From Lytechinus pictus (taxonomy: Eukaryota), in contig NC_087246.1 in assembly GCF_037042905.1 (NCBI RefSeq), forward strand, positions 45,632,001-45,696,000: DNA of 64,000 bases, given 5' to 3'. The translations under genes and the position numbers were made by a program. Positions 2,726 through 57,016 of the stretch are shown here, in pieces (positions within the stretch are counted from its first letter, which is position 1; every line of letters starts with the position of its first letter). The notes under the pieces are model-generated. The model saw only the letters and a program-made list of their open reading frames with translations. It ran no database searches and was not told the origin of the DNA.

Positions 2726-2944
2726 ACGTCAACGTTTAAGAACTTTCATGATTCCGAATATTTGCTTTTGCGTTGGATACTTACCTACATACATGTAACT
2801 ATGTAGATTTGGTACAAGTGTTCGTGACAATTACAGTTGTACGGTGAAATCCATCATATTTTACTGGTCTAAGCATAAACAAGAAATTATTATCATGAAT
2901 GTGAATTAACGGATTCTATATTTTTTTCCACTCGTGGGCTGGAT

Positions 2945-3600
2945 AGCCCTCTTCAGCCACAGGCTGTTCTTCAGAGGGGTCCAGTGGACACGTTTAAAAA
3001 TACAAACATACAATATACAAACAAATACATATATTAAAGAAAACATAAATCAATCCTATACAAGATAGTTAGGACTACAAATTACAACTTATACAAATGT
3101 TTTGTTTTTTAAGTGGGATGGGGGATGGTGGGGGGGGGGGGGGATGGTAGCATGCAGTAAGGGGGAATCATAATAGGTGTTGAGCTAATGTGGTCCGAAG
3201 CTTTATCTTGAAGGTAGAAAGATAAGTTTCAGGAGGGATGTACGATATCAACTTGTTCCATAGCTTTCCGCCTTGAAACAAGAAACGTCTTTAATGTGCC
3301 ATATTCAGTTTTGGGGCAGCTCAAGGCCAGTTGCTATTTTCCTGACCTTGTTTTGTATATAGATTTATGGGAAATAAATATATCGCTAAGATATGGTGGA
3401 CCAAGACAATGTACGGATTTAAACATGACAACGGCCAAGTGTTTGGCCCAACGAATTTTTAGATTATCTATATTAAGCGAAGAATAAAGGAGTTTCGATG
3501 GATATAGGTAGTCAACCTGTAATCAGTTTTCAATGCTCTATTTTGTAATGTTTGCAATTTCTTATATTTGGTTTGGGAAGTTTTTCCCCATACAGTGCAA
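2945..3600 (-). mobile_element. 3' fragment of a CR1/L2-group LINE
   Basis: Minus strand 3540-3600 reads CTVWGKTSQTKYKKLQTLQNRALKT, typical of the RT C-terminal region of these LINEs; decayed; boundaries approximate. Confidence 0.55.
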
Positions 3601-4501
3601 CGAAGACTATGCCTTGAATTTTAACATATCATTAAATTTTCTTATCTTAATCGTTTTATTTTTTTTATTATCATTATGAAAAATATATGAAAATCTATTC
3701 GTGAAAACAATTTTGGCATATTCAATTTTCAATTTCACTTTGAATTTTCATTTTTGTCCATATGTCATCGTTCTAATCCTATTTACATGTCTTTTTACAG
3801 AAAAAAATTTGCAAGAAACAACCTTTTCCTTTGTATTTATGTTTTTAAACTTTGTTATGTATTTATTTCTATCGTTTCTTCTACATTGTTTTTTAATGAA
3901 AATTATTACAGACCATTTAACAATTAATTCAATCTTAAACTATTTCAGCAAACCAATTAGAAAGAGAGTAATGATCATTTTATGAATTTCATCTCGGTTC
4001 AAAAATTTACACAAGACTTCAAACAAAAAAGGTCATAAGATTTCGCGTTCCGAGAATATCGCGCGAATCGTTAAGGGGGCCCCTCGTCCTTTTGGGACAT
4101 CCTGATAATAAATGGCGAAACAGATCGTGCTAGTTTGTTACGTATAATAATATTGACTTTGCTTCTGAATCCCCGCAATCAAATAAAATTGTCAAATTAC
4201 AAGACAAGTATTGACCCTGTCGTGTCTGTCAAACCGAATAATGGAAAATGAGACCCTCGCATCTCGCCAGTTGACTTTGCCGGAGGCTGGAAGGCAAAAG
4301 GACTGACTAGAAATAATTGTCTCATCGTTCATGTTTTTTTTTATTCATAAACATGTATTCTTTTTTATAATTGTGTAATTTCCTTGTTTGTTTTATTAAT
4401 ACGTTTTGTTGTTTTGCATCGGTTGAATAGCGCTTTTGTCGTAAATAAAGGTAACAGAAGATATACATTTCACGTATTTTTCGACAACTCTGCCTGCAAC
4501 A

Positions 4502-14137: not shown

Positions 14138-14140
<3 letters not shown>
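13318..14140. mobile_element. Tc1/mariner-type MITE with ~300-bp TIRs, flanked by (TA)n
   Basis: cagtgcgtcccacaaaaaacgaaaccgag ... ctcggtttcgttttttgtgtgggacgccctg; TA runs on both sides; absent from duplicate copy 2 (~20835). Confidence 0.9.
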
Positions 14141-14227
<87 letters not shown>

Positions 14228-14585
14228 TAACAAAGAACAGCTTACCTTTTGATGCAGCACTATGTTTATAGTTTGAGGGGTTTCCTAATAATTCTTCAAA
14301 ACTTATCACCGGAAAGCTATAGCAATACATGCACCGAAATAGATGAAGTTTTAAGGCCTGAGCACACGTCGCCTTCTGGCTCAAGAGCTCAAACAAAGAT
14401 GTATTATATAAATTGATCAAAAAATCCCAATGCCCTTTTGAACAGGGGCATAACCTTCGCAGATGTAATTATGGGATTAACTTTGCAGAATATGATACCT
14501 GATTCTCAGTTGCCCCACCCACGTCCTGACTACCGTGATGCGAAAGCAAATATTATATTTACACATCGGTATCATTAATGCATCT

Positions 14586-22616: not shown

Positions 22617-24197
22617 CAGCGGCGTAACAGGGGTCGGTGGCCAGAGAGGGAGGGGGTGGGGGGCAAGAGCCAAAGATTACCCGGTAATATCATGGTATGA
22701 ACAGGCGTAATCAAATGAGGAGGCGACTATTTTGAGATGGCCAGATATTGCGTATATCGGGCAGAATTTATATTTTTTTAAAAGTTGCGAGCGAGCAATA
22801 ATTTTGACATTTCTAATACAAAAATTAAATTTTGTGATAGATTTTGACATGATATCCGAAGAATAATATATTTCACTCTTCTCTCTTTGCATTCTTTTTT
22901 GTGGTCTGTACGCCACTGTGAACAGGATTCTTTGCGGCAGTATAGCGTGAAGAGTAAAAAGAAAAAACCAGGGGCACAGTATAGCACATGTGCTAAAAAA
23001 CTGCTTTATATAAGTCCCGAGCGAGCGAAGCGATCGAGAAAAAAAAACCTTTCATGAAAATCTAACTTTGAGCTATTTTTTGAAATTATATTCAGAAAAT
23101 AAAATCATATTCTACACTTTTCCTTTGCTTTCCCTTCCTCCTTTTTTTGTTCTTCTTTGTGGAACTTTTGGGGGCCTTGGCCCAACACTTCCATACGCAG
23201 TGCTGTGCGGTTGGGGTCCGGGGCGGAGCCCCCGGAACTTCTCGATATCAAAGCCATTTAAACCTCGCAGATTGCCGCTATTTTAATCAAATCGCGGGCA
23301 TATACAGAATATAGCTTTTACACAACACATTTTTAAAACCCAGTTGCGTAATGAAGCAAATATTTTGAGGGGGCAAAACATAGCAATGTGGGGTAAAAAG
23401 CGAGCTCGAAAAAAAATTGCCTATTGAAATTAAATTCTAATTATGTAATAGATTTTTCCATTATATTCAGCAAAGAACACATTTCATTGTTTCCATTCAT
23501 TTCATTATACGTTGTCTCCTATAATTTCTTTTATTCCTCTTGGGTGTGGAACCAAGACCCCCCCCCCCCCCCGCCTGTATGCCAGTGATTGAACGTGATT
23601 GAACGGGGGCGTTATAGAGCCATTTGAAGGTTAAAAATGAAGAGCCCCTACTGCATGCGTGGGGTCTGGGGCAAAGCCCCGGTAGCTTATTTGCATAAAA
23701 CTTAGCAAGCTTATAGCACAATGTTGTATGCAGTCCATCTTTCTTCCCGCTCTTTAATTTCAATCATCGGCAGCCCGGTCGTTTTATTATTTTTTTCTTG
23801 TCCCTTTTCTTTGTTTTCCAAATTAGCTTTTGACTAATTACATTCTACCTTCGTTTCCCGCTATTGTTTGCCATTTTGTTATCTTTTAATCAATTTGTCA
23901 CTTTGCTATTGCATTACATAGGCCTATTTCGGAATGATTTGTTCTTTCTCAAATGTTCTTCTTTCGTACATGATTTTCCCGCTTTCCTTCCCTTTCCATT
24001 AAAAAAAAAGTTTTTTCTTCGTTTTCTTTTCACTTTTCCATTTCCCTTTCCTTTTCCTCCTTTTCTTTTCCCCTTTGCTTCCCCTTTCCCTTTCTTTCTC
24101 CCTCCTTTTTTTCTTGTTCCCGTTTTTCTTTTATTTTCCCGGTGAAATCCGCCAGGGGGGCAACTTGCCCCCCTGCCCCCCGCCTGTTACGCCACTG
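22617..24197. mobile_element. 1.58-kb non-autonomous hAT-like element
   Basis: cccaaccc|cagcggcgtaacagg ... cctgttacgccactg|cccaaccc; empty site at ~15436; inverted relative at 33155-34645. Confidence 0.88.
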
Positions 24198-25758: not shown

Positions 25759-26038
25759 GTGTAACGTATACATCAACATCCAACCAACAACCATATTTTC
25801 TCACTCACGGAAATATAATACGCGCACATCCTCACGCACGCACACCCTCACACACAGACCCACCTCAGTCTATATGTACACATTCGTATCATTTGTAGAC
25901 ACTATAAAAAACACTTTACAATGAATACTAGAATGAAACATCCACAAATGAGCGCTATACATTCAGCAAACCATAATGCTTTTAACATTATTTCAGTCAG
26001 GAGTCAAATTAAACACTTTTGTTATGCGATATTATAGT

Positions 26039-26520
26039 AAAAGAATCATTTTGGCAGACTCGGAAAGCGAACCTCGATGTTTGAAGAAAAAAAACAGGGA
26101 ACAATATAAATCATGATTAAAGAGCCGAGCAAATACATATCAGACGCATGACATCACTTCTACATGTACATGTATATAATAGAAGTATATTAAACTTCCC
26201 TTTTCATGAGATGATGGATTATAAAGAAACCGTCAAGTTTGGGATGTCAGAATCGATTTGTTAATAAAAGCAGCTAGAAATGCAATATTATATTAAAAGA
26301 ATCATTTTGGCAGACTCGGAAAGCGAACATCGATGTTTGAACAAAACAGGGAACATTATCAAACATGATTAAAAAGCCGAGCAAATACATATCAGACGCA
26401 TGACATCACTTCTACATGTACATGTATATAATAGAAGTATATTAAACATCCCTTTTCATGAGATGATGGATCATAAAGAAACCGTCAAATTTGGGATGTC
26501 AGAATCGATTTGTTAATAAA
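26039..26520. repeat. ~256-bp tandem duplication in the presumed 3' UTR
   Basis: aagaatcattttggcagactcggaaagcg at 26041 and 26297. Confidence 0.9.
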
Positions 26521-26964: not shown

Positions 26965-29900
26965 CTGAAGATAGTGAAATCAAATAGATGGGGATTTTTT
27001 TGGTTAGTATAGGAAGGATTAATGAGAGTAATACAGAAAAAAAAAGACCAGTTATACAAGGTGTTATACACTTCTACATGCATTAATCTTCAAAATATAC
27101 ACACACTTAAAATGTTGGGCAACATACTGTCCACTGAGTTGGGTAATGTATGTTGTAATATATATATATATATATATATATATTTTCTGGGCAATTATTA
27201 TCCAGTTGAGCAAATTCATTACCCTATTTGTTTTTATTACCCAATTTGGGCAGATTTTAACTAATAGTTGTGTGGACAGCATGTTGCCCCGGGTTACTTA
27301 AAAGTTGGGCATTTTTCATGGGTGTCTGGAAAACGAAGACCGAAGACCGAAGACCGGGGACTCATATCACACTCGTGTGAAAGCGTTTGTAGTTCACGCC
27401 CAGTGTGTACAAAGCAGTGCAAAGTGTGTACAAAACACGTGCGCGGGTTAGAATGGACTTTGGACCTTGCCCCGACACATGTTCTCCCATTGACAATGCA
27501 CGGGTCCCCGGTCTTCGATCTTCGTTTTCCAAACCCGTTGTTGGGTGTCTGGAAAACGAAGACCGAAGACCGGGGATCGCATTCGTTTAGCTAAGATACC
27601 ACTTATAAATGTCATTATGAAGGCCTCTATTATTCAGCTCAAATTCAAGAATATTCTGATCTAGAATACATTATATCACTAATTGGCTGATAATGAAGTC
27701 ATGTTAATTGCTTGTGTCAATAAATAGTATAGTTAGACCAGTTGAAGCGGGATAGGTCTCCCATTTTACACCACTATTCCACTGAGACAAGTAACAAACT
27801 CCAGTAATCAATCAGACCAGTTTCAAATTTCCAGTTAAAGGTTAACTCTAGACCAGTAATTTCAGACCAGTTTAATTCTTAACTGGTCCAGTAAAGTGAA
27901 CTCGACCAGTTAGACCAGTAAGCCGTTTTTCCATCTTCCAGAATTACATTCTGTGAACTGGTTTTTCCTTCTTAATTGGCTGACATTAATTTGCAATTTT
28001 ACTACCATTGACGTAACGCATGTCCCCGGTCTTCGGTCTTCGTTTTCCAAACCTGTTGTTGGGTGTCTGGAAAACGAAGACCGAAGACCGGGGATCGCGT
28101 CAATTCGTCTAGCTAAGATAGGCCTATAATATTCAGCACCAGTTTAAGAATATTCTGATCTTGGATACGTCATCAGCTATGATTGGCTGCGGATAAGTTA
28201 TGGTCATTTGTGTGAATTTCGTTATCAGCTAGGGCATGATATTAAGGATAACGTACATATTTCACCCACGGAATTCAGCCATTGCAATTCTGAAAACTGT
28301 CATAAAACTGAAAACTTGCATACAATACACCTCATACTGCGCAATCACGTACAAGCAGACTCAACTCATCTGGCGTTTGCAACTATTTTACTACCATTGA
28401 CATTACGCATGTCCCCGGTCTTCGGTCTTCGTTTTCCAAACCTGTTGTTGGGTGTCTGGAAAACGAAGACAGAAGACCGGGGATTGCGTATTCGTCTAGC
28501 TAAGATAGGCCTATAATATTCAGCTCCAATAATATTCTGATCTTGGATACGTCATCAGCTATGATTGGCTGCGGATAAGTTATGGTTATTTGTGTGAATA
28601 TCGTTATCAGCAAGGGCATGATATTAATGATAACGTACATATTTCACCCACGGAATTCAGCCATTGCAATTCTGAAAACTGTCATAAAACTGAAAACTTG
28701 CATACAATACACCTCATACTGCGCAATCACGTACAAGCAGACTCAACTCAACTGGCGTTTGCAACTATTTTACTACCATTGACATTACGCATGTCCCCGG
28801 TCTTCGGTCTTCGTTTTCCAAACCTGTTGTTGGGTGTCTGGAAAACGAAGACAGAAGACCGGGGATTGCGTATTCCTCTAGCTAAGATAGGCCTATAATA
28901 TTCAGCTCCAGTTTAAGAATATTCTGATCTTGCCCAGAAGGAAAAACCAGTTCCACTGGACCAGTTAGACCAGTACAATTTTTACTGGTAACTCTGGAAA
29001 TTGGAACATCGGTTTATTGGTCTAACTGGTCATACTGGTCCAGTTAAAATTTTACTGGTCCAGTTAAAAATTAAACTGGTCTTGAATTACTGGAATTTTA
29101 TACTGGTCTTGTTTCTGGTGGTTGTTGTTACTGGTCTCACTTGTCTCCAATTCAAGCTGGTCTTTACTGGTATTTTCTACTGGTCTGACTGGTCCTCGAA
29201 CTGATCGAACTGGTCATCGTATTGGTCTTAACTGGATCAATTTATTACATGCATGTGGTTTGTTATATACCATGGTCAGTGAAATGTGATAGAAAAGATG
29301 GTTAGTAAATTAATCTTTCAGCTGTTATTTTAAATGTGATATATAAAATTACACATTTTCATTGTGAATTAGTTCACACACTTATTTGGAAAGTTTTTAA
29401 ACAACAATGAGTGCCATTGCAAGGATATTCCATTCTAAATCCTGATTTTTTTTTTAAAATAGGAAATATGCAAATGAGGAAAGCCACGTGATCAGCATCA
29501 TCAGAATTACTGGTATTACTGGTCTTGACCAGTTCAATTTCAAACAATGAATTACTTTAGACCAGTTGACTATATCAGAGGAATACATCTTGCTTTGATC
29601 ATAATCATGATTAAAGGAAATAATTATTTTAATGATAATGTTAATACTTGATAATCATGATAATATTAATAACAATAATTACAATATCAATAACAATGAT
29701 AACAGCAATAAGAATGATAACAACAATGATCATAATAATCACGATAATTATAAGAAGAATGATGATAACAATAATAACGATAATAACTTTCTCTAAATTG
29801 CAAGATTCATTTTCCATAATTCGTCAAATGATCTGACTTGAAATAAAGTCATTATTTATTGGACCAGTAACACCAGTTTGATGAAAAACAATTTAACTGG

Positions 29901-32900
29901 TATTACTACTTTGCTTCAACTGGAATGCAATTGTTGGAACTGGTCTCCAGATGATTTTTAATGGTCCAGTTAAAAATCAACTGGTCCAGTAAACATATAC
30001 TGGAAACCAGTTAAAATCTACTGGAAACCATTTATTGGACCAGAAACACCAGTTTGATGAAAAACAATTTAACTGGTATTACTACTTTGCTTCAACTGGA
30101 ATGCAATTGTTGGAACTGGTCTCCAGATGATTTTTACTGGTCCAGTTAAACATATACTGGCCCAGTTAAAATATACTGGAAACCAGTAAAATTCTACTGG
30201 AAACCAGTAAAAATTCTTACTGGTCTTACTGGTTTTTCCTTCTGGGTGGATACGTCATCAGCTATGATTGGCTGCGGATAAGTTATGGTTATTTGTGTGA
30301 ATATCGTTATCAGCTAGGGCATGATATTAAGGATAACGTACATATTTCACCCACGGAATTCAGCCATTGCAAAACTGAAAACTTGCATACAATACACCTC
30401 ATACTGCGCAATCACGTACAAGCAGACTCAACTCAACTGGCGTTTGCAACTATTTTATACTACCATTGACATTACGCATGTCCCCGGTCTTCGGTCTTCG
30501 TTTTCCAAACCTGTTGTTGGGTGTCTGGAAAACGAAGACAGAAGACCGGGGATTGCGTATTCGTCTAGCTAAGATAGGCCTATAATATTCAGCACCAGTT
30601 CAAGAATATTCTGATCTTGGATACGCCATCAGCTATGATTGGCTGCGGATAAGTTATGGTTATTTGTGTGAATATCGTTATCAGCTAGGGCATGATATTA
30701 AGGATAACGTACATATTTCACCCACGGAATTCAGCCATTGCAATTCTGAAAACTGTCATAAAACTGAAAACTTGCATACAATACACCTCATACTGCGATA
30801 TCACGTACAAGCAGACTCAACTCAACTGGCGTTTGCAACCGACTATTTTACTTCCATTGACATTACGCATGTCCCCGGTCTTCGGTCTTCGTTTTCCAAA
30901 CCTGTTGTTGGGTGTCTGGAAAACGAAGACAGAAGACCGGGGATTGCGTATTCGTCTAGCTAAGATAGGCCTATAATATTCAGCTCCAAGAATATTCTGA
31001 TCTTGGATACGTCATCAGCTATGATTGGCTGCGGATAAGTTATGGTTATTTGTGTGAATATCGTTATCAGCAAGGGCATGATATTAATGATAACGTACAT
31101 ATTTCACCCACGGAATTCAGCCATTGCAATTCTGAAAACTGTCATAAAACTGAAAACTTGCATACAATACACCTCATACTGCGCAATCACGTACAAGCAG
31201 ACTCAACTCAACTGGCGTTTGCAACTATTTTATACTACCATTGACATTACGCATGTCCCCGGTCTTCGGTCTTCGTTTTCCAAACCTGTTGTTGGGTGTC
31301 TGGAAAACGAAGACAGAAGACCGGGGATTGCGTATTCGTCTAGCTAAGATAGGCCTATAATATTCAGCTCCAGTTTAAGAATATTCTGATCTTGGATACG
31401 TCATCAGCTATGATTGGCTGCGGAGAAGTTATGGTTATTTGTGTGAATATCGTTATCAGCTAGGGCATGATATTAAGGATAACGTACATATTTCACCCAC
31501 GGAATTCAGCCATTGCAAAACTGAAAACTTGCATACAATACACCTCATACTGCGCAATCACGTACAAGCAGACTCAACTCAACTGGCGTTTGCAACTATT
31601 TTATACTACCATTGACATTACGCATGTCCCCGGTCTTCGGTCTTCGTTTTCCAAACCTGTTGTTGGGTGTCTGGAAAACGAAGACAGAAGACCGGGGATT
31701 GCGTATTCGTCTAGCTAAGATAGGCCTATAATATTCAGCACCAGTTCAAGAATATTCTGATCTTGGATACGTCATCAGCTATGATTGGCTGCGGATAAGT
31801 TATGGTTATTTGTGTGAATATCGTTATCAGCTATAGGGCATGATATTAAGGATAACGTACATATTTCACCCACGGAATTCAGCCATTGCAATTCTGAAAA
31901 CTGTCATAAAACTGAAAACTTGCATACATATACACCTCATACTGCGCAATCACGTACAAGCAGACTCAACTCAACTGGCGTTTGCAACTATTTTACTTCC
32001 ATTGACATTACGCATGTCCCCGGTCTTCGGTCTTCGTTTTCCAAACCTGTTGTAGGGTGTCTGGAAAACGAAGACAGAAGACCGGGGATTGCGTATTCGT
32101 CTAGCTAAGATAGGCCTATAATATTCAGCTCCAGTTTAAGAATATTCTGATCTTGGATACGTCATCAGCTATGATTGGTTGCGGATAAGTTATGGTTATT
32201 TGTGTGAATATCGTTATCAGCAAGGGCATGATATTAAGGATAACGTACATATTTCACCCACGGAATTCAGCCATTGCAATTCTGAAAACTGTCATAAAAC
32301 TGAAAACTTGCATACAATACACCTCATACTGCGCAATCACGTACAAGCAGACTCAACTCAACTGGCGTTTGCAACTATTTTATACTACCATTGACATTAC
32401 GCATGTCCCCGGTCTTCGGTCTTCGTTTTCCAAACCTGTTGTTGGGTGTCTGGAAAACGAAGACAGAAGACCGGGGATTGCGTATTCGTCTAACTAAGAT
32501 AGGCCTATAATATTCAGCACCAGTTCAAGAATATTCTGATCTTGGATACGTCATCAGCTATGATTGGCTGCGGATAAGTAATGGTTATTTGTGTGAATAT
32601 CGTTATCAGCTAGGGCATGATATTAAGGATAACGTACATATTTCACCCACGGAATTCAGCCATTGCAATTCTGAAAACTGTCATAAAACTGAAAACTTGC
32701 ATACAATACACCTCATACTGCGCAATCACGTACAAGCAGACTCAACTCAACTGGCGTTTGCAACTAGCTATTTTACTACCATTGACATTACGCATGTCCC
32801 CGGTCTTCGGTCTTCGTTTTCCAAACCTGTTGTTGGGTGTCTGGAAAACGAAGACAGAAGACCGGGGATTTCATTCGTCAAGCTAATTACCACATATAGC

Positions 32901-34333
32901 GTGCTATGGACACGTTTCCGTGCAATTGTACTTCGTTTTCTTCATGCTGGCTGATAAACAGACCTTAAAACAACCGATATACGTGGATACAATATTCCAT
33001 GAAATTGTCATATCGTTTTTAAAGAAAACAAATTTTCAAACTGAAAAAATGCATGCAATTAATAGATGCTTACATAGAATCAGGGGCGTAGCAGCGTTCG
33101 GTGGCCAGGGGAGGGGGGGGGGACGAGAGCCAGAAAATTCCCGGTCATTATCATCAGTGGCGTAATTAAGAAAAACGGGAAAAAGAAAAAAGGGAGGGAG
33201 AAAGAAAGAAAGAAATGGAACTGGGGAAGGAAATGGGAAAAGGAAAGGAGGAAAAGGAAAGGGAAAATTGAAAAGAAAACGAAGAAAAAAACTTTTTTTT
33301 TGAATGGAAAAGAAAGGAAAGCGGGAAAATATACGAAAGAAGAACATTTGAGAAAGAACACATCATTCCGAAATAGGCCTATGTAATGCAATAGCACGGT
33401 GGGAAATAATTTAAAAGATAACAAAATGGTATGAAGAGCGGGAAAAGAAGGTAGAACGTAATTAATCAAAAGCTAAATTGGAAAAAAATACAAGGGAAAA
33501 AAGGACAAGAAAAAAATATTAACACGACCGGGCTGCCGATGATTGAAAAGAGCGGGAAGAAAGATGGTCTGCATACATTGTGTTATAAGCTTGCTAGACT
33601 TTATGCAAATAAGCTACCGGGCCTTTGTCCCAGACCCCACGCAGTATGGGCTCTTCAGCATTTATAACCTTTAAATGGCTATATACCTATACCCCCGCGC
33701 CCCCCGTTCAACAATGTTCAATCAATGGCATACAGGCGGGGGGGGGTGTTCCACACCCAAGAGGGAAAAAAAGAAAATAGGAGACAAAGTATAATGAAAT
33801 GAATGGACAATGAAATGTGTTATTTGCTGAATATAATGGAAAATATATCACATAATTAGAATTTAATTTCAATAGGCAATTTTTTTCCAGCTCGCTTTGC
33901 ACGCTAGCGACTTTTTTTCCACGTTGGTATGCTTTGCCCTATAAATATTTGGTTCATTACGCAACTGGGTTGAATAAATGTGTTGTGTAAAAGCTATAGT
34001 CTATGTAGAATGCGATTTGATTAAAATAGCGGCAATCTGCGAGGTTTAAATGGCTTTGATATCAAGAAGTTTTCAGGGGGCTCCGCCCCGGACCCCAACC
34101 GCACATCGATCACTGCGTATGGAAGTGTTGGGCCATGGGCCCAAAAAGTTGTACAAACAAAAACACAAAAAAAGCAGAGGAAAAGTGTAGGATATGATTT
34201 TATTTACTGAATATAATGTCAAAAAATAGCTCAAAGTTAGATTCTCATGAAAAGGTGATTTTTTTATCGCTCGCTTCGCTCGGGACTTATATAAAACAGC
34301 TTTCTTTAGCACATGTGGTATACTCCACCCCTG

Positions 34334-34364
<31 letters not shown>

Positions 34365-37300
34365 CTTCACGTTACAGCCGCAAAGAATCCTGTTCACAGT
34401 GCGCGTACAGACGACAAAAAAGGAATCCAAAGAGAGAAGAGTGAAATATCATTCTCTGGACATCATGTCAAAATCTATCACAAAATTTGATTTTTGTATT
34501 AAAAAGGTCAAAATTTTTGCTCGCTCGCACTTTTTTAAATAAAAGATAAATTCTGTCCGATGCACAATATCTGGCCTTCTCAAAATAGTGTCGGCTCATT
34601 ACGCCTGTTTATACCATATAATGTGACCAGGAAATTACGCCGCTGCATATCATGGTGTGAAGAGCGGTCTGTCCCCTGGATAGGAACATCGGCAGTAATT
34701 GGGCGATATCTTGAAGTTCACTAATTTGTGTCCCCTTATGATTGCGGCTAGTTGCGTGAAATCAAAATAGGCTATTATATACACGTCATACCCACACACC
34801 AGCCGAGTCTTTCTTACCGTTCTTGATTTTCAACCTCGGTATCCCGGTTGTGTTCCAGTGGCGTAGCTAGGATTTTTTTCCTGGGGGGCACTGGGGGTCC
34901 TTGCTTTGAGTCAGGGGGGCACCATTTTTATCCGGTGTGTACTTGTCACAAGGGCCCGAAATTATCTTCACCTATATTTTTCCCGATCAGTCACTTCTTC
35001 GTTATATTCTTATAAAACAGCATAAACATGAAATAATCTCATAAGCATTATAAAAAGTGCGAGCGCGAAGCGCGAGCGATTTTTTTTTTATTTGTTACTT
35101 TCATGTAATATTCTGGGCAATGTTATGTGTGATCCCGATCAAGATTCGTATGTAACTAGATGGTTACTGCGAACGCCAAGCGCGAGCAGAAATTTTTATT
35201 AACTGTTCTAGCATTATCGAAAAGGGACCTGTTAAGTGCACTTATATAGGTACCCACGAAGATGGTATATATTTCAATAATGCAATTTTTTTGACATTCC
35301 GACCTAAAAGAATGGTAATTCTAAGCACTTTTTGTATCAATAAATGGGATAGGTATGTAACGAAACAATGGATGCGAGCGCGAAGCGCGAGAGGAAAAAA
35401 AATGAGATTTTAGACCTAAAAGCGGGACACTATTCATATTTTGTAAATCATAAATAGGATATAATTAATTGGGTATCATTAATTATGCTATCGTAAAGCG
35501 CGAGCAGACAATTATTTATATTCTGATGTGAAACTGGATAATTCAAGTAGATTTTAAATAAAGAACATGCATGCTATCGCGCATGTTTTAGATTTAGACC
35601 TAGAATCTGGGCATTCTGAATATATTTCTTTTAATGGAACATTTTAATGGAACATTATGGAATACATGTAGACAATAGGAACTTGGCAAATCAAACAATG
35701 TGACCACGCAGCGTGAGCTTTAAAAAAAAATGCTGATATGTAGACAATAAAACGGACATTTTGCAGAGCACTTAAATTTGTAAATGAAAAAAATATTGAA
35801 AGCTCGATGTCCGAGCTAATTATGTTTTGTATAATGACTTCAAAACTTGCTCCATATCAGCCTATTGAGCAAGATATGAATCTCATCGAACAGTCAATTC
35901 TGGCGCGAAGCGCAAGCAAATATTTTTTATAGTAACATGAAAGAATTGTTTCTTTTTTGGCAAGTCTTCCCCTCACATTATTTCATTCATTCGTCTCCCT
36001 CCTCTAATTTTCCTCTTCTTTTTTCTTCTGTCTTTCTTCTTCTTTTTCTTTTCTTCTTTCTCCCTTTTTTTTTTGCTCTACCAATTTTTTTCCAGGCGGG
36101 GCACCTGATGGGGGCACACCAAATCTCAGGGAGGGGGGGGGGGCTCCCAGCCCCCCCCCCCCCCCCCCCCGTAGCTACGCCACTAGCTGTTGTGTTCTTA
36201 ATTTCTTTCTTTTCCCCTCTTGTTTTTTCTGTTTTCTATTCCGATTTCATGTTAGCATTTTCGCATCCCGTTTATTTTGGCCTCTCTTCCTTCCCTTTCC
36301 CGCCTAAAATTTCCGTTCCACTTTGCCATCTCTTTATTTCTAACCCCTTTCTCACTTGTTTATTAGTAGGCCCTATTTCAGGATGATTAGATTTGTTTGA
36401 TCATTCCAATTATTGGCCCTTTTCCTTTCTCCTTTCTTCCTTCTCTTTCTCATTGTTTGTCTCGCCCGCAAGAGGTGAAGGCGAGACTAAGAGATCCAAA
36501 TGTCGTCCGCCCGTCGATTCCCAAAGAGGGTAAGCCGATTCTGCGGTGCAAGATAGACCAAAAGCCAATTCTGCATCGGCTTTTGGTTCTGAACCAAAAG
36601 CCGATGCACGTGTAAACAGGGTAATTTTCTTCCAAACGCGTACTGAATTGTTGCTCTCGAAATGTACGCGTGGGAACGTCTCGGGTTTAACCGCAAAGTA
36701 GTAGCGACACACTTGTGTTTCATGTGCGCCGACCGTATAGAAAACATCGCATACCGGCAACAGCATTCTACAAAAGCACGCTTGCCACCTGTCTTATAGG
36801 TCGATGACATTGCTTTCTATTACAATTAGGTTTATTTTATACGGAGCCTTTAAAGGGATGGGCGGGCTGAAAGCATGTATAGCTTAATGAATAGAGTAAA
36901 ATTCCTCGAGCAAAATATCGAAAATTTCATCAAAATCGGATAACAAAGTTATTGAATTTTAAAATTTAGCAATATTTTGTGAATACAGTCGTCATGAATA
37001 TTCATTAGGTTGGCTGATGATGTCACATCTCCACTTGTTCTTTTGTATTTTATTATATGAAATTAGGTTTATTCAAATGTTTTCATCCAAGAACAAAAAA
37101 GTAGAAAAATTGGATTGGCAACTGATTTAGTGCATTAAAAATTCATTGCTGCAACTTGTTTCATTATAAGGGAGACATATATATTATTAGCACAAATATG
37201 AAATAATGTAAAAATTATGATTATATATAATAACATAGGGAAACGGAGAGTGGAGATGTGACATCATCAGCCCACCTAATGAATATTCACGACGACTGTT

Positions 37301-40300
37301 TTAACAATATATTGCTAAACTTTAAACTTCAATAACTGTTTACTTGTTATCCGATTGATGAAATGTATTAAGATATAAATATTTTCAGCCAGGACCATCC
37401 CTTTTACATGTTTTAATTGCCATCGACTTGGCGAGAAACTTAATTATGCCATGTCGACATAATGTCGACATGGCGAGATACGTTATCTCGCCATGTCGAC
37501 ATATATGACCTTTTATAAGTCGACTTGGCGAGATATCGTATCTCGTCATCTGGATGTGAACGATATTCACACAAATAACTATAACTTTTCGGCAGCAAAT
37601 CATAGCTGATGACGTATCCAAGATCAGAATATTCTTGAACTGGTGCTGAATATTATAGGCCTATCTTAGCTAGACGAATTGACGCGATCCCCGGTCTTCT
37701 GTCTTCGTTTTCCAGACACCCAACAACAGGTTTGGAAAACGAAGACCGAAGACCGGGGACATGCGTTATGTCAATGGTAGTAAAATAGTTGCAAACGCCA
37801 GTTGAATTGAGTCTGCCTGTACGTGATTGCGCAGTATGAGGTGTATTGTATGCAAGTTTTCAGTTTTATGACAGTTTTTGGAATTGCAATGGCTGAATTC
37901 CATGGGTGAAATATGTACGTTATCCTTAATATCATGCCCTAGCTGATAACGATATTCACACAAATAACCATAACTTATCCGCAGCCAATCATAGCTGATG
38001 ACGTATCCAAGATCAGAATATTCTTAAACTGGAGCTGAATATTATAGGCCTATCTTAGCTAGACGAATACGCAATCCCCGGTCTTCTGTCTTCGTTTTCC
38101 AGACACCCAACAACAGGTTTGGAAAACGAAGACCGGGGACATGCGTAATGTCAATGGTAGTAAAATAGTTGCAAACGCCAGTTGAGTTGAGTCTGCTTGT
38201 ACGTGATTGCGCAGTATGTGGTGTATTGTATGCAAGTTTTCAGTTTTATGACAGTTTTCAGAATTGCAATGGCTGAATTCCGTGGGTGAAATATGTACAT
38301 TATAATTGTCTATCCTTATTAATCATGCCCTAGCTGATAACGATATTCACACAAATAACCATAACTTATCCGCAGCCAATCATATAGCTGATGACGTATC
38401 CAAGATCAGAATATTCTTAAACTGGAGCTGAATATTATAGGCCTATCTTAGCTAGACGAATACGCAATCCCCGGTCTTCTGTCTTCGTTTTCCAGACACC
38501 CAACAACAGGTTTGGAAAACGAAGACCGGGGACATGCGTAATGTCAATGGTAGTAAAATAGTTGCAAACGCCAGTTGAGTTGAGTCTGCCTGTACGTGAT
38601 TGCGCAGTATGAGGTGTATTGTATGCAAGTTTTCAGTTTTATGACAGTTTTCGGAATTGCAATGGCTGAATTCCGTGGGTGAAATATGTACATTGTAATT
38701 AGTATCTATCCTTATTAATCATGCCCTAGCTAATAACGATATTCACACAAATAACCATAACTTATCCGCAGCCAATCATAGCTGATGACGTATCCAAGAT
38801 CAGAATATTCTTAAACTGGAGCTGAATATTATAGGCCTATCTTAGCTAGACGAATACGCAATCCCCGGTCTTCTGTCTTCGTTTTCCAGACACCCAACAA
38901 CAGGTTTGGAAAACGAAGACCGGGGACATGCGTAATGTCAATGGTAGTAAAATAGTTGCAAACGCCAGTTGAGTTGAGTCTGCTTGTACGTGATTGCGCA
39001 GTATGTGGTGTATTGTATGCAAGTTTTCAGTTTTATGACAGTTTTCAGAATTGCAATGGCTGAATTCCGTGGGTGAAATATGTACATTATAATTGTCTAT
39101 CCTTATTAATCATGCCCTAGCTGATAACGATATTCACACAAATAACCATAACTTATCCGCAGCCAATCATATAGCTGATGACGTATCCAAGATCAGAATA
39201 TTCTTAAACTGGAGCTGAATATTATAGGCCTATCTTAGCTAGACGAATACGCAATCCCCGGTCTTCTGTCTTCGTTTTCCAGACACCCAACAACAGGTTT
39301 GGAAAACGAAGACCGGGGACATGCGTAATGTCAATGGTAGTAAAATAGTTGCAAACGCCAGTTGAGTTGAGTCTGCCTGTACGTGATTGCGCAGTATGAG
39401 GTGTATTGTATGCAAGTTTTCAGTTTTATGACAGTTTTCGGAATTGCAATGGCTGAATTCCGTGGGTGAAATATGTACATTGTAATTAGTATCTATCCTT
39501 ATTAATCATGCCCTAGCTAATAACGATATTCACACAAATAACCATAACTTATCCGCAGCCAATCATAGCTGATGACGTATCCAAGATCAGAATATTGTTA
39601 AACTGGAGCTGAATATTATAGGCCTATCTTAGCTAGACGAATACGCAATCCCCGGTCTTCTGTCTTCGTTTTCCAGACACCCAACAACAGGTTTGGAAAA
39701 CGAAGACCGAAGACCGGGGACATGCGTAATGTCAATGGTAGTAAAATAGTTGCAAACGCCAGTTGAGTTGAGTCTGCTTGTACGTGATTGCGCAGTATGG
39801 GGTGTATTGTATGCAAGTTTTCAGTTTTATGACAGTTTTCAGAATTGCAATGGCTGAATTCCGTGGGTGAAATATGTACATTATAATTGTCTAATCCTTA
39901 TTAATCATGCCCTAGCTGATAACGATATTCACACAAATAACCATAACTTATCCGCAGCCAATCATAGCTGATGACGTATCCAAGATCAGAATATTCTTGA
40001 ACTGGTGCTGAATATTATAGGCCTATCTTAGTTAGACGAATACGCAATCCCCGGTCTTCTGTCTTCGTTTTCCAGACACCCAACAACAGGTTTGGAAAAC
40101 GAAGACCGAAGACCGGGGACATGCGTAATGTCAATGGTAGTAAAATAGTTGCAAACGCCAGTTGAGTTGAGTCTGCTTGTACGTGATTGCGCAGCTAGTA
40201 TGGGGTGTATTGTATGCAAGTTTTCAGTTTTAATGACAGTTTTCGGAATTGCAATGGCTGAATTCCGTGTGTGAAATATGTACATTATAATTGTCTATCC

Positions 40301-43300
40301 TTATTAATCATGCCCTAGCTGATAACGATATTCACACAAATAACCATAACTTATCCGCAGCCAATCATAGCTGATGACGTATCCAAGATCAGAATATTCT
40401 TAAGCTGGAGCTGAATATTATAGGCCTATCTTAGCTAGACGAATACGCAATCCCCGGTCTTCTGTCTTCGTTTTCCAGACACCAAACAACAGGTTTGGAA
40501 AACGAAGACCGAAGACCGGGGACATGCGTTATGTCAATGGTAGTATAAAATAGTTGGAAACGCCAGTTGAGTTGAGTCTGCTTGTACGTGATTGCGCAAT
40601 ATGAGGTGTATTGTATGCAAGTTTTCAGTTTTATAACAGTTTTCAGAATTCCAATGGCTGAATTCCATGGGTGAAATATGTACGCTATCTTTGATATCAT
40701 GCCCTAGCTGATAACGATATTCACACAAATAACCATAACTTATCCGCAGCCAATCATAGCTGATGACGTATCCAAGATCAGAATATTCTTGAACTGGTGC
40801 TGAATATTATAGGCCTATCTTAGCTAGACGAATTGACGCGATCCCCGGTCTTCTGTCTTCGTTTTCCAGACACCCAACAACAGGTTTGGAAAACGAAGAC
40901 CGAAGACCGGGGACATGCGTAATGTCAATGGTAGTAAAATTGCAAATTAATGTCAGCCAATTAAGAAGGAAAAACCAGTTCACAGAATGTAATTCTGGAA
41001 AATGGAAAAACGGCATTCTGGTCTAACTGGTCGAGTTCACTTTACTGGACCAGTTAAGAATTAAACTGGTCTGAAATTACTGGTCTAGAGTTAACCTTTA
41101 ACTGGACATTTGAAACTGGTCTGATTGATTACTGGAGTTTGTTACTTGTCTCAGTGGAATAGTGGTGTAAACTGGGAGACCTATCCCGCTTCAACTGGTC
41201 TAACTATACTAAGTATTGACACAAGCAATTAACATGACTTCATTATCAGCCAATTAATGACATTAATGTATTCTAGATCAGAATATTCTTGAATTTGAGC
41301 TGAATAATAGAGGCCTTCATAATGACATTTATAAGTGGTATCTTAGCTAAACGAATGCGATCCCCGGTCTTCGGTCTTCGTTTTCCAGACACCCAACAAC
41401 GGGTTTGGAAAACGAAGATCGAAGACCGGGGACCCGTGCATTGTCAATGGGAGAACATGTGTCGGGGCAAGGTCCAAAGTCCATTCTAACCCGCGCACGT
41501 GTTTTGTACACACTTTGCACTGCTTTGTACACACTTCGGGCGTGAACTACAAACGCTTTCACACGAGTGTACTATGAGTCCCCGGTCTTCGGTCTTCGGT
41601 CTTCGTTTTCCAGACACCCATTTTTCATCCAACTATTCAAGAAGTCTTTGTCACAAGTATAGTTGAACCGGAGCACTAGCAGCTCCGCCCTAGATTAGCA
41701 GCGATTAATTGCAAATTTATTGTTCGCCCAGAATCTGCTGTTTTTGGTTCACCAATTTTTGACATCTGCTCCTTGACGGGTATTGAACAATATTCTCTTC
41801 TTGAAGTGCCGGTAGGTCGCTGATGGAAAATTTCCTTATTATGTTGCATAGGCATGAATGGTATCATTTATGTTGGCTAAAAAAGTTCGGACCGATCATA
41901 ATTTATGGACCTTTCAGCCAGTTAGGATTTTAACCCCCCTCCCCCCCCCCGGGCTCCCTTAAGAAAAGCGAAGGTTCACACTATAACCATTCCTCATTTC
42001 TGTTGACATAGGGCGCGCAAGCAGGATGGTGGCGATCATAGTACATCACTGCTCATACATGTCATAGCCACTGGGTCAAACTAACTTGTCAACCCCCCCC
42101 CCCCCTCTTAGCAGAAAGCTAGACCCACCACTGATTATTTGGCAAAAGTATAACTCTGTGACTAATGCCACGAGCTACATTTTAATGTGTGAAATGGCTT
42201 CATGGTCTTTATTAAGACATGAATGACTGTGACCATTCAGGTATACACTTTGAATTCAACTTGCATTTATCAACCATACGGTCGTTTTCTTTAAGATGAT
42301 TGTTCGCACTCAATGAAATATACATCTATAATGTGCAGTAGATCAGTCCCAAAATTACCGTTTCACCTTCATTAATACGTGGTTAAATAATTGCTTCTCA
42401 AAAGTATGTTGCCATGAGTAATATTACCTTCCCCAGCAAATGGTGATGATTGCTAGGACGATGGCCAGGGCTACGATGATGGCAATGATGATGATGAGAA
42501 CGTATTGGAGCTCTAACAGAACTTCACCTTCCTCGACGGCACCCCTGGTCACCTCCAAGACCGTCACATTGACTTCTCTTGCAATGGTGTCGATGTTAGC
42601 AGAGACTGCTTCATACAGCGCTCCTTGGCTCAAGTAACCTAGAATGTGATCAAAGCAAAGGTAAACATGATTATTTTGTTCTTATTCTACCACGTAAATG
42701 AAACATGAATCTTGATATAAAGTATAAAAGTCTTTCGTTAACTTATTTACATTCAAATGGTGGATTATTGAACGTACAAATCCAGGTTATTTTTTCAAGA
42801 GGCCTTCAGAACCTTAGTTCGTGAGTATACTCTTAAAAGGAATAAAGTAACCAATAGATTGGTGAATATGTGCCCGACCCATAGATAAAAACGGTCAATA
42901 TCAAGCAGATTATAACTTATCAATTGCTTGATATTTACCATTTTTGTCGGTCGGACACATATTAACCAAAGTATTGTTTATTTCCACTAACCCTAAAAGT
43001 GCGTATGTTGCTATTCTTCATTAGTATTAACCCTAAGCATTTACCAAATAGAAGAATACTGTTAACATACCCTCCGAAGAAGAGTCTGTCTGCCTTTTGT
43101 CTCTTGGTATCACATGCAATTGGGCATCTCTTCTTTTTCGACCAAGTGCCCAGTTCTCCATGCAAAGATCACTTGGTGTTGGGGGCGTTATGAGCAGCAT
43201 GACCGCGAAGGCTTCTATTGGGTCGTATTGAGGGCGCTCTTCGGGGTAGCCATCTGCTACGGACACGTGGCTACTGTCGACATAATTCAATGTCAGGTCA

Positions 43301-46300
43301 CTGTGATGTATCATGGAGGTTGTGGAAGAAAGAGGAAACGTTTAATGCCAAATGTTTTCTTTCGTTTTATTTGATTACTTATCCGATTGAGTGACATATC
43401 GTTAAAAATATTCAACATTAGGCCTAGTACTGTCCAAGTAGAAAATGCTAGCACACAAGCATATAAAAATTATGTACGACATGGGGACTGTGTTGCATAT
43501 AGTGTTGAGATTGCAACAAAAGGTTTTTTTTTGTTTTTCACTCTTACATGTGCTAAACGTGCTGACTGAAGCTTCAATATCTTAAAATAATCATGGTCAT
43601 CATCTTACCCTATTAAGCAGATAGTCGGAGATAAGAACGTGGTTGGTGCTCAAGTTTATTACCTAGTAAACGCTCGCATTGATCCTAGTATCAAGACGTA
43701 CGGTTGCTATATTTGTAGACCCCAATCAATGTTCATGTGGTCTTGAATCCCTAAACATTATATTCCTTATGAATGTGTGAGGGTATCTTTATTTGGTGTT
43801 GAAGTAAGTACTTCTTAACATCAGTTCTACATTTTTAGCATCAGCTTGTACTTTGCCGTTTCTAACTCCCCTTATGGTATCGGAATATTTCCAATGCTGT
43901 GGTACGAATATTCAAATCAATGTTACACTGCAGTCTGTATAAAAGACCGATATACATATTGTTGCTACTGAACTGATATAGGCATAGGCCCTACATTGAA
44001 ATAATTATTTGAGTAATGAGCAGAACATGTTGATCTATATCTCTTGGCCTGAATATTTGAAATGTCCTCAAAATCTGTTTTTACTGGTTGGCAACCACCT
44101 TGCATTTTTAAAGAGATACCAAAGTGTTTAACTGCATTCGTGCTAATTCCATTATTCCATTTCTACCATGTCTCGCATGAGCATTGTAATCCCGCGAAGA
44201 GTAGTAAAAACACGGTGCTTGCTTGGCATTGACAGTATTGATCATCGCGAAAATAATGTCATATATTAACCCGAACATTTGAAACGCTCGTAAGATAATT
44301 CACATTATGAGTAGAAATTATTTCACGAGAATAGCCAAATATATTTATCTGCATTCTTGGTTGTTGTGTCCCTCTTCTGTTTAAGTCCCAAAAAGAGTAC
44401 TTAAAAGTCACTGGAGCTCTATTTCTTAAAGAACTGCTATTATGGTCACCTTGCCAATTATTGTACCATGCTAGCATGGTGTCAAAGCGGCATGGTTCTA
44501 AACAAGTGAACCCGGGGGCCGTTTCACAGAGCTGTTCGTGAGTTGGGAGCGACTGGTGATCCTTTCTTACGCGTTAAACCATCGCCAATTTATCATACCA
44601 TTTGCCACTGACAAGAAAGTATCACCAGTCGTTCTTGGAGTCGCTCTTGACTTGCGAACAGCTTTAAGAAATGGCGCCCTGTTATGACTCTCAGAATTAT
44701 GGTAACAACCAGGGACAAAACACATCACCATTTTTGCAAATGTAAATGTGTATAGACAATCGTGCAGCTGCGACTAAGTTTAGAACCAGCCGGTTCGTTG
44801 TCATGACATCGTGAAGTCACACTTTGGTACTCTATGGCAAAGTTACTAGTAACACTAGTCTGTAACTAATCAAAGTGCCCCTAAACAATCCGAAGCTTTC
44901 TCAGCATTGAGGTAAACAATGATCATGATACAATACTTACGTATCTTTTCCGGTACCTCCTGGGCAACAAAGGGGGTAGAAGATATCGCCATTACAGACG
45001 CCTGTGACCAGTCGGCTGACTAACGCAAAAAGCAGATCGCGAATTCGTGGGAACTGTAGCAAAGACAAGATGTATTTTTTTTCTGTATTTGAATCAGTGA
45101 GGAAATTACCGTCTTCACACTGGCCACAAACACCGACAGTACCGGGACTGTCCCGATACTGTAGCGGTGTTGCTTTAAGTGTGAATTCTCTGACCCGCAT
45201 AAACTACCCTAGGATAACCTCGCCTCGCTATATAACTCCGCAACAACCTATCGCTAGAAAAGCCATAGTAATAGCAGCGGGAAAGCCCCGCGACTGTCGC
45301 GGTGTTCTTTCAGTTTGAAGGCACACCGCTACAACACCGTTATAATCCGCTTGTGATAATTATGTTAACTATATACATGTATAATGTGGGGGCGTCGTGA
45401 TATTGTGGTTATGACTCTCGTCTTTCAATCTGAAGGACGTAGGTTCGATTCCCCACCCTCAATCATTTCCGGTGTATCAGAGACGGGTCATGATTCACGG
45501 GGTCACAAAGCCTATACGGAGGTCATAACAATCACTTGCTGCAAAATAAATATGGTAAATGGATGCATGAAATTTACCCCTGGACTGTGCCGGGTTAACG
45601 TTTATACTGTGAATGCATTTATAGCAGGTTTATAGCGATGTCACTGTCCCGCGACAGCACCGGGATAAATTTGAAAACCAGCGTGAAGACGGTATTCGAG
45701 ACCAGTCATAACCACCTGTATCGGCAGCACAGAAACGTTGTTAGTGCTAGCTATGCGCCAATAGAGGCTCTGTTAACGGTTAACCTGTAATATCGCAGCC
45801 GATGCCTAATGTCACAACAATGCGTTATATGGATCAACGTTTGACATCACGATCCGAAAGAGGCCACCGGGCCTACTGATAGTGCTCTGGTAGCGCTAAC
45901 AGCGTTTCTGCGCCTCCGGTGTTGATTTCGTGCGACCACCTGGAACAACTACGATCACTCTCAAGGCAATACTATTACCCAGTCACTTTCAAAATATGTA
46001 AATCACAAAGAATAAATAAACAAAAGTCATTTTATAGAGTGCTCTTCATTAACGTTTCACGGCGCTTTTCAACATAACATTATTAATTATTAAAAAGGAA
46101 TACATCACTTAAATCTGAAATTCACAAATACGCATTTTTATCAATTCACATACAATATTTTATCAGGTATTATGATTACTACTTTTATTCAAATTCAAGT
46201 CATTTTGGTGAAAATGTTTCGCCTTATCATTGAATACACACGGAAATATAAAATGTATACTGTACATAAAATGTCATAATAATTAGTAACGAATAGGTTT

Positions 46301-56885: not shown

Positions 56886-57016
56886 NNNNNNNNNNNNNNN
56901 NNNNNNNNNNNNNNNNNNNNNNNNNNNNNNNNNNNNNNNNNNNNNNNNNNNNNNNNNNNNNNNNNNNNNNNNNNNNNNNNNNNNNNNNNNNNNNNNNNNN
57001 NNNNNNNNNNNNNNNN
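56886..57016. other. Assembly gap (131 N)
   Basis: Run of N. Confidence 1.

Follow-up and report, generated by a model that had tools for sequence, protein, structure and literature searches.

The window considered here is a stretch of 64,000 nucleotides from the sea urchin Lytechinus pictus (NCBI RefSeq assembly GCF_037042905.1, contig NC_087246.1, positions 45,632,001 to 45,696,000 of the forward strand). Between positions 27320 and 41619 it carries an element of 14,300 bp, with ends GGGTGTCTGG...CCAGACACCC, whose arms are long inverted arrays of tandem repeats and which is flanked on both sides by an exact 9-bp target-site duplication, ATTTTTCAT. The structure of this element, its relatives in this and other genomes, and its likely identity as a non-autonomous, Foldback-type Mutator-like element (MULE) are the subject of this report. 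The features of the locus are as follows, with the strand where one applies and further particulars in brackets.

27101-27319, plus strand: left part of the interrupted host miniature inverted-repeat transposable element (MITE), which starts CACACACTTAAAATGTTGGGCA (genome paralogues)
27311-27319: left copy of the target-site duplication, ATTTTTCAT (sequence at the junction)
27320-27542, plus strand: left terminal A unit, 223 bp, beginning with the terminus GGGTGTCTGGAAAACGAAGACCGAAGACCGAAGACCGGGG (unit mapping)
27543-28060, plus strand: left B unit, 518 bp (identity with its right-arm counterpart, 97.7%)
28061-28932, plus strand: left-arm C units 1 and 2, and the first 101 bp of unit 3 (unit mapping)
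28933-30246: nested element of 1,314 bp with perfect 19-bp terminal inverted repeats (TIRs), CCCAGAAGGAAAAACCAGT (outside the foldback family)
30247-32886, plus strand: remainder of the split C unit 3 of the left arm, followed by units 4-9 and a partial unit of 52 bp (unit mapping)
32887-37558: non-coding middle segment, 4,672 bp (common to the non-autonomous subfamily)
37559-40875, minus strand: right-arm C units, inverted, eight full and one partial of 163 bp (unit mapping)
40876-41394, minus strand: right B unit, 519 bp (unit mapping)
41395-41619, minus strand: right terminal A unit, 225 bp, ending ...CCAGACACCC (unit mapping)
41620-41628: right copy of the target-site duplication, ATTTTTCAT (junction and MITE paralogues)
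41629-41648, plus strand: final ~20 bp of the interrupted host MITE, CCAACTATTCAAGAAGTCT where the paralogue consensus reads CCCAACTATTTTAAGAGTGT (MITE paralogues)

Read on the plus strand, and with a slash marking the junction, the left boundary at 27320 is ...gttgggcATTTTTCAT / GGGTGTCTGGAAAACGAAGACCGAAGACCGAAGACCGGGG..., the terminus being preceded by gttgggc and ATTTTTCAT; the right boundary at 41619 is ...CCAGACACCC / ATTTTTCATccaac, in which the end of the element is the exact reverse complement of the left end and is followed by ATTTTTCAT and ccaac. The left arm (27320-32886, 5,567 bp) comprises the A and B units, nine full C units of 371-391 bp and the 52-bp partial unit, while the right arm (37559-41619, 4,061 bp) comprises its own A and B units, eight full C units of 387-403 bp and the 163-bp partial unit. 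Identity between the arms is 98.2% for the A units and 97.7% for the B units, and one stretch of 272 nt is 100% complementary between them. The element has the defining architecture of a foldback: long terminal inverted repeats composed of tandem sub-repeats, with C units of ~390 bp mirrored on the two sides. Mirror symmetry is limited to A, B and the first C unit. Farther inward each arm has a higher-order duplication of its own, a three-unit duplication in the left (C units 2-4 match 5-7 at 98-99%) and a two-unit duplication in the right (C units 4-5 match 6-7 at 99.7-100%), which argues that the arrays change independently of one another by unequal exchange.

The left arm is the longer because a foreign element of 1,314 bp sits in its C unit 3. 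This is a later insertion: it splits the unit, with an apparent 2-bp (TG) duplication, and the paralogous unit C6, 98.9% identical to the split unit, is uninterrupted. The nested element is rich in CCAGTTAAAA-type sub-repeats. A related ...CTGGTTTTTCCTTCT stretch occurs in the B unit, which suggests that B may be a C-type unit carrying the remnant of an element of the nested kind.

The element lies within the end of a MITE that is itself abundant: first-look candidates in the genome number above 1,300, and the 40 copies scored are 80-90% identical. Six of the nine MITE paralogues that were read run without interruption over the insertion point (...AAAAGTTGGGCATTTTT-TGCCCAACTATTTTAAGAGTGT), and the window becomes colinear with the paralogues once the element and one copy of ATTTTTCAT are removed. 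These uninterrupted paralogues constitute a paralogous empty site, and the insertion was precise. An earlier reading of the sequence (hereafter the original prediction) had described GGG...CCC ends, an exact 9-bp duplication and multi-kilobase tandem-array arms at this position, and had proposed that the element interrupts the end of a small MITE and should have an empty site; all of these are borne out.

Long inverted, near-identical arrays assemble poorly, and none of the short contigs that fall on the right junction bridges it. The 14.3-kb structure could thus be conceived as a collapsed or chimeric palindrome introduced by the assembly, or as a local inverted duplication, rather than as a mobile unit, and the number of C units, being that of the assembly, would be open to the same doubt. 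We consider this hardly credible, given the exact 9-bp duplication at both ends, the colinearity of the flanks with uninterrupted MITE paralogues, and the existence of thirteen further copies with the same termini and perfect duplications of their own, together with some 22 copies that have the same centre.

The extent of this family is evident from a genome search with the A unit, which returned 601 candidates, of which only 40 were scored; at least 40 near-full-length copies (96-100% identity) are present, and these pair up as plus- and minus-strand ends. The count covers the 14 end-pairs with both flanks available, and every one is bounded by a perfect duplication that differs from those of the others, of 9 bp in seven pairs and of 10 bp in the remaining seven. 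Because six of the seven 10-bp duplications start with C or end with G, these may represent 9 bp plus one extra terminal base. Sizes within the family are 1.37, 3.4, 4.9, 10.7, 10.8, 12.0, 14.3, 17.3, 22.5, 22.8, 26.4, 43.5, 62.9 and 74.9 kb. Some copies consist of arms only, separated by loops of 4-7 bp (3.4 kb on C19, 1.37 kb on C5 and 1.46 kb on C15), and in others the middle is 4.7 kb or ~55-64 kb in length. Hence what moves is the whole unit, generating its own target-site duplication at each independent insertion, with a middle that differs or is missing from copy to copy.

The 14.3-kb copy is an ordinary member of this family. Its giant size, emphasized in the original prediction, is real but falls in the middle of a range from 1.4 to 75 kb, and the order A, B, C that was noted for its arms holds for this copy without being fixed in the family, where unit order differs among copies; in the copy on C4, C units follow A directly. 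The C units were also expected to seed a satellite of ~385 bp. A query of four C units yielded only 95 first-look candidates and no free-standing array among the 16 scored, all of which lie in or beside family copies, although this sample is limited and arrays in unassembled heterochromatin may escape it. Arms can nonetheless become very long: C-unit hits cover ~19 kb at one end of the 43.5-kb copy on C22.

A candidate source of transposase was revealed by scanning the genome with the Pfam MULE model, which gave one hit inside an end-pair of the family on C5 and an equal-scoring hit on C4. The first lies in a copy of 62,925 bp (C5:27290437-27353361, duplication GTACTTGCC) and the second in a copy of 74,926 bp (G000:C4:3049977-3124902, duplication TGAATATTA). 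Both giant copies carry the same 40-nt tips as the 14.3-kb element, the first 40 terminal bases of the C4 copy and of that element being identical. The interiors of the giant copies are colinear at 97-99.8% identity, and their flanks differ, from which it follows that an element of ~60 kb was transposed as a unit. They contain the only two full-length copies of the MULE open reading frame (ORF) in the genome. This ORF encodes 894 aa; it is intact on C4, where it occupies C4:3097446-3100127, and interrupted by one in-frame TGA in the C5 copy. The protein matches PF10551 at 30.7 bits (curated cut-off, 27.6), and residues invariant over 15 homologues include the DDE candidates D301, D370 and E503, a CxxH motif (C391/H394) and a SWIM signature (C691-x-C693...C702-x-H704). 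Its neighbours in the protein atlas are MULE/SWIM clusters. A MULE-type DDE transposase with a SWIM zinc finger and duplications of ~9 bp (range 8-11) are the hallmarks of the Mutator superfamily. The classification as Foldback-type, Mutator-like and non-autonomous that had been proposed is thus upheld by the structure, the 9-10-bp duplications, the non-coding centre and the MULE/SWIM giant copies; the two checks suggested with it, namely A units paired genome-wide around distinct duplications and a MULE transposase enclosed by these termini, gave the 14 pairs and the two giant copies just described.

Several other features of the giant copies may be recorded. Just downstream of the transposase (G000:C4:3101848-3107787 and C5:27304885-27307053) lie about four tandem repeats of ~1.9 kb, each holding a decayed transposase C-terminus (55-74% identity, with stop codons). 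The 74.9-kb copy also contains an intact-looking ORF of 994 aa from a long interspersed nuclear element (LINE), with endonuclease and reverse transcriptase (L039:3272-6253, equivalent to G000:C4:3081272-3084253); this open frame is not present in the 62.9-kb copy.

Foldback shape could in principle be convergent, and the family might derive from a different superfamily, whether P/Galileo-like, hAT-like or akin to the classic TU element. P elements make duplications of 7 bp and hAT elements of 8 bp, whereas all 14 pairs examined here have 9-10 bp, and the sole transposase found between these termini, in L. pictus as in other species, is of the MULE/SWIM type. We regard such a derivation as highly improbable.

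The main reason for regarding the MULE protein as the family's own transposase is that the tip sequence is conserved together with it across species. At five foreign loci from other marine invertebrates (L047, L049, L050, L051 and L064), transposase homologues with 40-50% identity are located between or next to the same terminal motif, whose common form is GG(G/T)TGTCT..AAAACGAAGA(C/T)CGAAGAC. All five have long arms of tandem sub-repeats, ranging from 29 to ~411 bp:

L050: tip GGGTGTCTACAAAACGAAGACCGAAGACC; 6.8 kb; TIRs of 330 bp with ~94-bp units; 9-bp duplication CAAAATATT
L051, the sea cucumber Apostichopus japonicus: tip GGGTGTGTCTAAAACGAAGACC; 14.9 kb; TIRs of ~1.5 kb with ~411-bp units; 10-bp duplication ACCACTCTCC
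L049: 14.9 kb; TIRs of ~1.6 kb with ~173-bp units
L047: right arm of 22 tandem 29-bp units, each with CGAAGACCGAAGAC
L064, the coral Desmophyllum pertusum: tip GGTTGTCTCCAAAACGAAGATCGAAGA; units of ~93 bp after the tip

At least one of the ~93-bp units at L064 folds as a CTACAAAACGAAGACC palindrome. At L047 an inverted pair of 168 nt with poly-G/C ends (699-866 and 14140-14307) adjoins the 29-bp array on its inner side and probably represents an unrelated MITE family.

These observations bear on a further alternative, which accepts the foldback family but takes the MULE ORF to be a nested transposon or passenger with no relation to it, so that another enzyme would move the family. The ORF is indeed situated tens of kilobases from either terminus, in an interior of 63-75-kb copies that is full of repeats and includes a LINE; the interiors of the non-autonomous and giant copies have one repeat of ~470 bp in common and nothing more; and the link between transposase and termini is one of co-occurrence. 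However, the MULE ORF occurs nowhere else in the genome, its homologues lie between or next to the same motif at five foreign loci, two of the foreign elements have 9-10-bp duplications, and duplications of that length fit the MULE superfamily. A nested, independent MULE with its own TIRs was considered and rejected, as no inverted-repeat pair brackets the ORF inside the giant copy. A passenger origin therefore appears improbable, and the transposase, which occurs only between these termini in L. pictus and with homologous termini elsewhere, is the candidate enzyme for acting on them.

The manner in which the terminal sequence is reiterated within the arms is also noteworthy. Each unit opens with the tip sequence GGGTGTCTGGAAAACGAAGAC..., always oriented as at the tip of the element. 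Counts of the 23-nt terminal motif are 12 in the left arm (plus strand) and 11 in the right (minus strand), and the rest of the 64-kb window has none with up to three mismatches allowed. At the junctions between units the tip motif is preceded by its own inverse, forming a palindrome with a 26-bp stem (CCCCGGTCTTCNGTCTTCGTTTTCCA, an 18-nt spacer and TGGAAAACGAAGACNGAAGACCGGGG) that has a folding energy as single-stranded DNA of -35.4 kcal/mol (z = -10.9). In contig sets from four sequencing runs, summed word depth reaches 10^4-10^5 on the bins containing the palindrome and terminal motif (40876-41595), as against tens to hundreds on the flank, implying that the motif is very abundant in those samples. 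Conservation of the tip across species suggests that the repeated motif is functional. By analogy with Galileo, and following a proposal made for Tetris, the repeated AAAACGAAGAC motifs are putative transposase-binding sites (PMC3688188, PMC4079207).

ORFs in the middle segment (32887-37558) do not exceed 149 aa, and the segment contains neither a match to nor a remnant of the family transposase or kinase (described below). At least 3.3 kb of it consists of dispersed repeats, at least three in number, at ~282-1731, 1969-3298 and 3966-4478 of the segment. The original prediction that the centre is mostly other transposable elements with no transposase is accordingly sustained, but these are not cargo that this copy acquired individually: the whole 4,672-bp block recurs in ~22 other places at 92-96% identity, nearly all of them in or beside known family copies, which implies that the block came together a single time, in an ancestral copy from which the non-autonomous subfamily was later amplified. 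Derivation of the centre by deletion from an autonomous copy was considered and rejected, as one ~470-bp repeat is all that is held in common beyond the arm-unit edges included in the query. Between copies the A units are ~99% alike and the centre ~95% alike, a difference to be expected where continued movement is confined to copies whose termini are good. In one copy of 26.4 kb (G000:C16:20129296-20155668), two 4.7-kb middle segments occur in the same orientation within a single 9-bp duplication; this copy looks dimer-like or internally duplicated.

Three observations concern the window outside the element. A copy of the ~1.45-kb repeat at 282-1731 of the middle segment, 82% identical, lies at 22692-24130 on the opposite strand. 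A 252-bp unit is present in two tandem copies (93% match) at 26024-26520, just upstream of the host MITE. A run of 131 N bases, either an assembly gap or a mask, occupies 56886-57016.

From the combined evidence we assign a probability of about 85% to the view that 27320-41619 is a non-autonomous Foldback-type MULE copy that entered the end of a MITE by cut-and-paste transposition, putatively mobilised in trans by the 894-aa transposase. According to this model, the MULE/SWIM enzyme, intact only in the 74.9-kb copy on C4, would bind the repeated motifs in the arms of the non-coding 14.3-kb copy, only the outermost motif would be cut, and the arm arrays would grow and shrink by unequal exchange; the family may still be active today.

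Several findings weigh against this model or restrict it. The binding of the motif by the transposase and mobilisation in trans are steps that we infer from sequence comparison. A single intact transposase ORF, that on C4, is present in the genome, and the non-autonomous subfamily has the arms but not the interior in common with the giant copies. The relative at L049 has no recognisable target duplication. The empty site is a paralogous one. The contigs of the four runs that fall on 40876-43560 are only 100-360 bp in length and none bridges 41619/41620, and the count of C units per arm is that of the assembly. Finally, the middle segment is 4-8% divergent between copies, compared with ~1% for the A units, which implies that the burst of amplification may not be very recent; alternatively, selection for mobility, or gene conversion, may have preserved the likeness of the termini.

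A second gene accompanies the transposase. The giant copies contain an ORF for a Ser/Thr kinase of 341 aa, located at C4:3065934-3066956 in the larger of them; the two versions are 100% identical, and the genome has no further copy. It has the full set of kinase motifs (GRGQFGEV, VMK, HRDLKPGN, DFG and APE), is only distantly related to kinases of solved structure (the best being SLK, TAK1 and CTR1, with E about 1e-13 to 1e-14), and is treated by the current annotation as belonging to the host ("serine/threonine-protein kinase 4 homolog B-like"). Of nine foreign loci with a transposase homologue, seven have a Pkinase gene upstream of it on the same strand: L047, L049, L051, L066, L067, L062 (Holothuria leucospilota, with a transposase of only 24% identity) and L064 (the coral). 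In L051 it sits inside the element delimited by the duplication; the call at L047 is that of a precomputed Pfam label, its edge tail not having aligned with the L. pictus kinase. There is no kinase in the 6.8-kb element at L050 or in the distant Mytilus locus L065, and a kinase locus in Ptychodera flava (L063) has no transposase within 10 kb. Equal-scoring kinase matches with 36% identity, each in an open frame of 1,393 aa, occur in L. pictus at G000:C14:19492904-19493824 and G000:C15:17985066-17985986, and these may belong to another repeated kinase-bearing element.

Apart from one close pair, the element kinases are 36-48% alike. Co-divergence of kinase and transposase was not seen in pairwise identities over seven loci (Spearman 0.06), and the Pearson coefficient of 0.64 for the same loci hangs on the one close pair. 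Since kinase distances do not track those of the transposase, it is the conserved position of the gene, not its phylogeny, that suggests a single ancient capture. It is possible, though at slightly less than even odds, that these elements represent an old clade of autonomous Foldback-type MULEs in coral, sea cucumbers and sea urchin, which has kept its own divergent Ser/Thr kinase upstream of the transposase on the same strand, along with arms of palindromic units, and which in L. pictus has transposed at sizes above 60 kb. Kinase-encoding MULEs or foldback elements were not found in the literature, a search that did not extend to Repbase-type reports and is no proof of novelty; a recurrent kinase inside such elements is, as far as that literature goes, apparently undescribed. 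Should the kinase prove to be a genuine gene of the transposon that regulates either the transposase or the host response, it would represent a new accessory function for a eukaryotic cut-and-paste transposon.

Among systems already known, the FB and FB-NOF elements of Drosophila melanogaster have 9-bp duplications, arms of tandem repeats, many copies without a centre and a few long coding copies. The L. pictus family resembles them in its 9-bp duplications, arms-only copies and few long coding copies, but differs in its units, which in FB are tens of bp and here are ~390 bp, each with a palindrome of 26-bp stem. We know of no FB kinase gene. The giant "TE" of Ising, which is flanked by FB, moved very large segments (PMC6431247). 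Movement of very large segments between arms is thus a further point of likeness.

A foldback element was described earlier in a sea urchin: TU of Strongylocentrotus purpuratus, reportedly the work of Liebermann et al. in 1983 and Hoffman-Liebermann et al. in 1985, is said to have arm repeats of ~15 bp and an 8-bp duplication. It is reportedly modular, one class having long inverted repeats and a common middle segment with deletions and insertions, and its middle sequences are said to be dispersed elsewhere as well. By this account TU is similar to the present family in being a modular sea-urchin foldback whose middle holds dispersed sequences, as does the L. pictus centre, but its ~15-bp units and 8-bp duplication differ from the ~390-bp units and the 9-10-bp duplications seen here. 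The L. pictus family is probably distinct from TU.

MuDR and MULEs at large have duplications of 9-10 bp, a transposase with MULE DDE, CxxH and C-terminal SWIM motifs, in some cases a second ORF, and many non-autonomous derivatives (PMC6446971, PMC5499845). The L. pictus family is comparable in each of these respects. Typical MULE TIRs, however, are 100-400 bp and lack the multi-kilobase arrays of the L. pictus arms, and the known accessory ORFs of MULEs (mudrB, mutB, vanB/C) are not kinases, unlike that of the giant copies. Pack-MULEs carry host gene fragments and are under about 7 kb (PMC6431247), whereas the L. pictus centre is non-genic, with no ORF above the 149 aa noted earlier, and copies of the family reach 63-75 kb. 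Galileo, of the P superfamily, has long, internally repetitive TIRs whose repeats include extra transposase-binding sites (PMC3688188, PMC3573991). Such TIRs are likewise long and internally repetitive in L. pictus. Neither the P/THAP transposase of Galileo nor its duplication, said to be 7 bp, was encountered in the L. pictus family.

The closest published analogue is Tetris of Drosophila virilis, in which a terminal domain is followed by tandem repeats of ~220 bp that have a motif in common with the terminus, and for which repeated motifs were put forward as extra transposase-binding sites (Dias et al. 2014, PMC4079207). Tetris has duplications of 8-10 bp and a variable non-coding middle, and affiliation with Mutator was proposed for it, its transposase not being known (PMC4079207). 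The two families, compared here by description, are alike in their long TIRs, made of a flanking domain and a variable number of long tandem repeats, and in their variable non-coding middle. They differ in that Tetris arms extend up to about 1.7 kb, as against 4-19 kb in the L. pictus family with its ~390-bp units; in that Tetris has no known transposase, whereas the L. pictus family has a candidate autonomous copy; and in that Tetris repeats also form free satellite arrays, of the kind not seen for the C units among the 16 of 95 candidates scored. The statement in the original prediction that known foldbacks have short repeat units does not hold, in view of the ~220-bp repeats of Tetris (PMC4079207) and the ~411-bp units of the Apostichopus japonicus relative; long units in foldback arms are already known and not unprecedented.

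For many foldback families, Tetris among them, the autonomous partner is unknown (PMC4079207). The L. pictus genome, on the other hand, presents a full system: copies of pure arms, a non-autonomous subfamily of 10-26 kb with a common middle, and two copies of 63-75 kb with a MULE/SWIM transposase whose catalytic residues are complete. A terminal motif conserved across species ties the enzyme to the ends, making the role of repeated sub-terminal sites directly testable, and the perfect duplications around copies above 60 kb open the size limit of cut-and-paste transposition to testing as well. Four features set the family apart: multi-kilobase arms of palindromic units, copies of 63-75 kb with perfect duplications, an identifiable transposase and a recurrent kinase.

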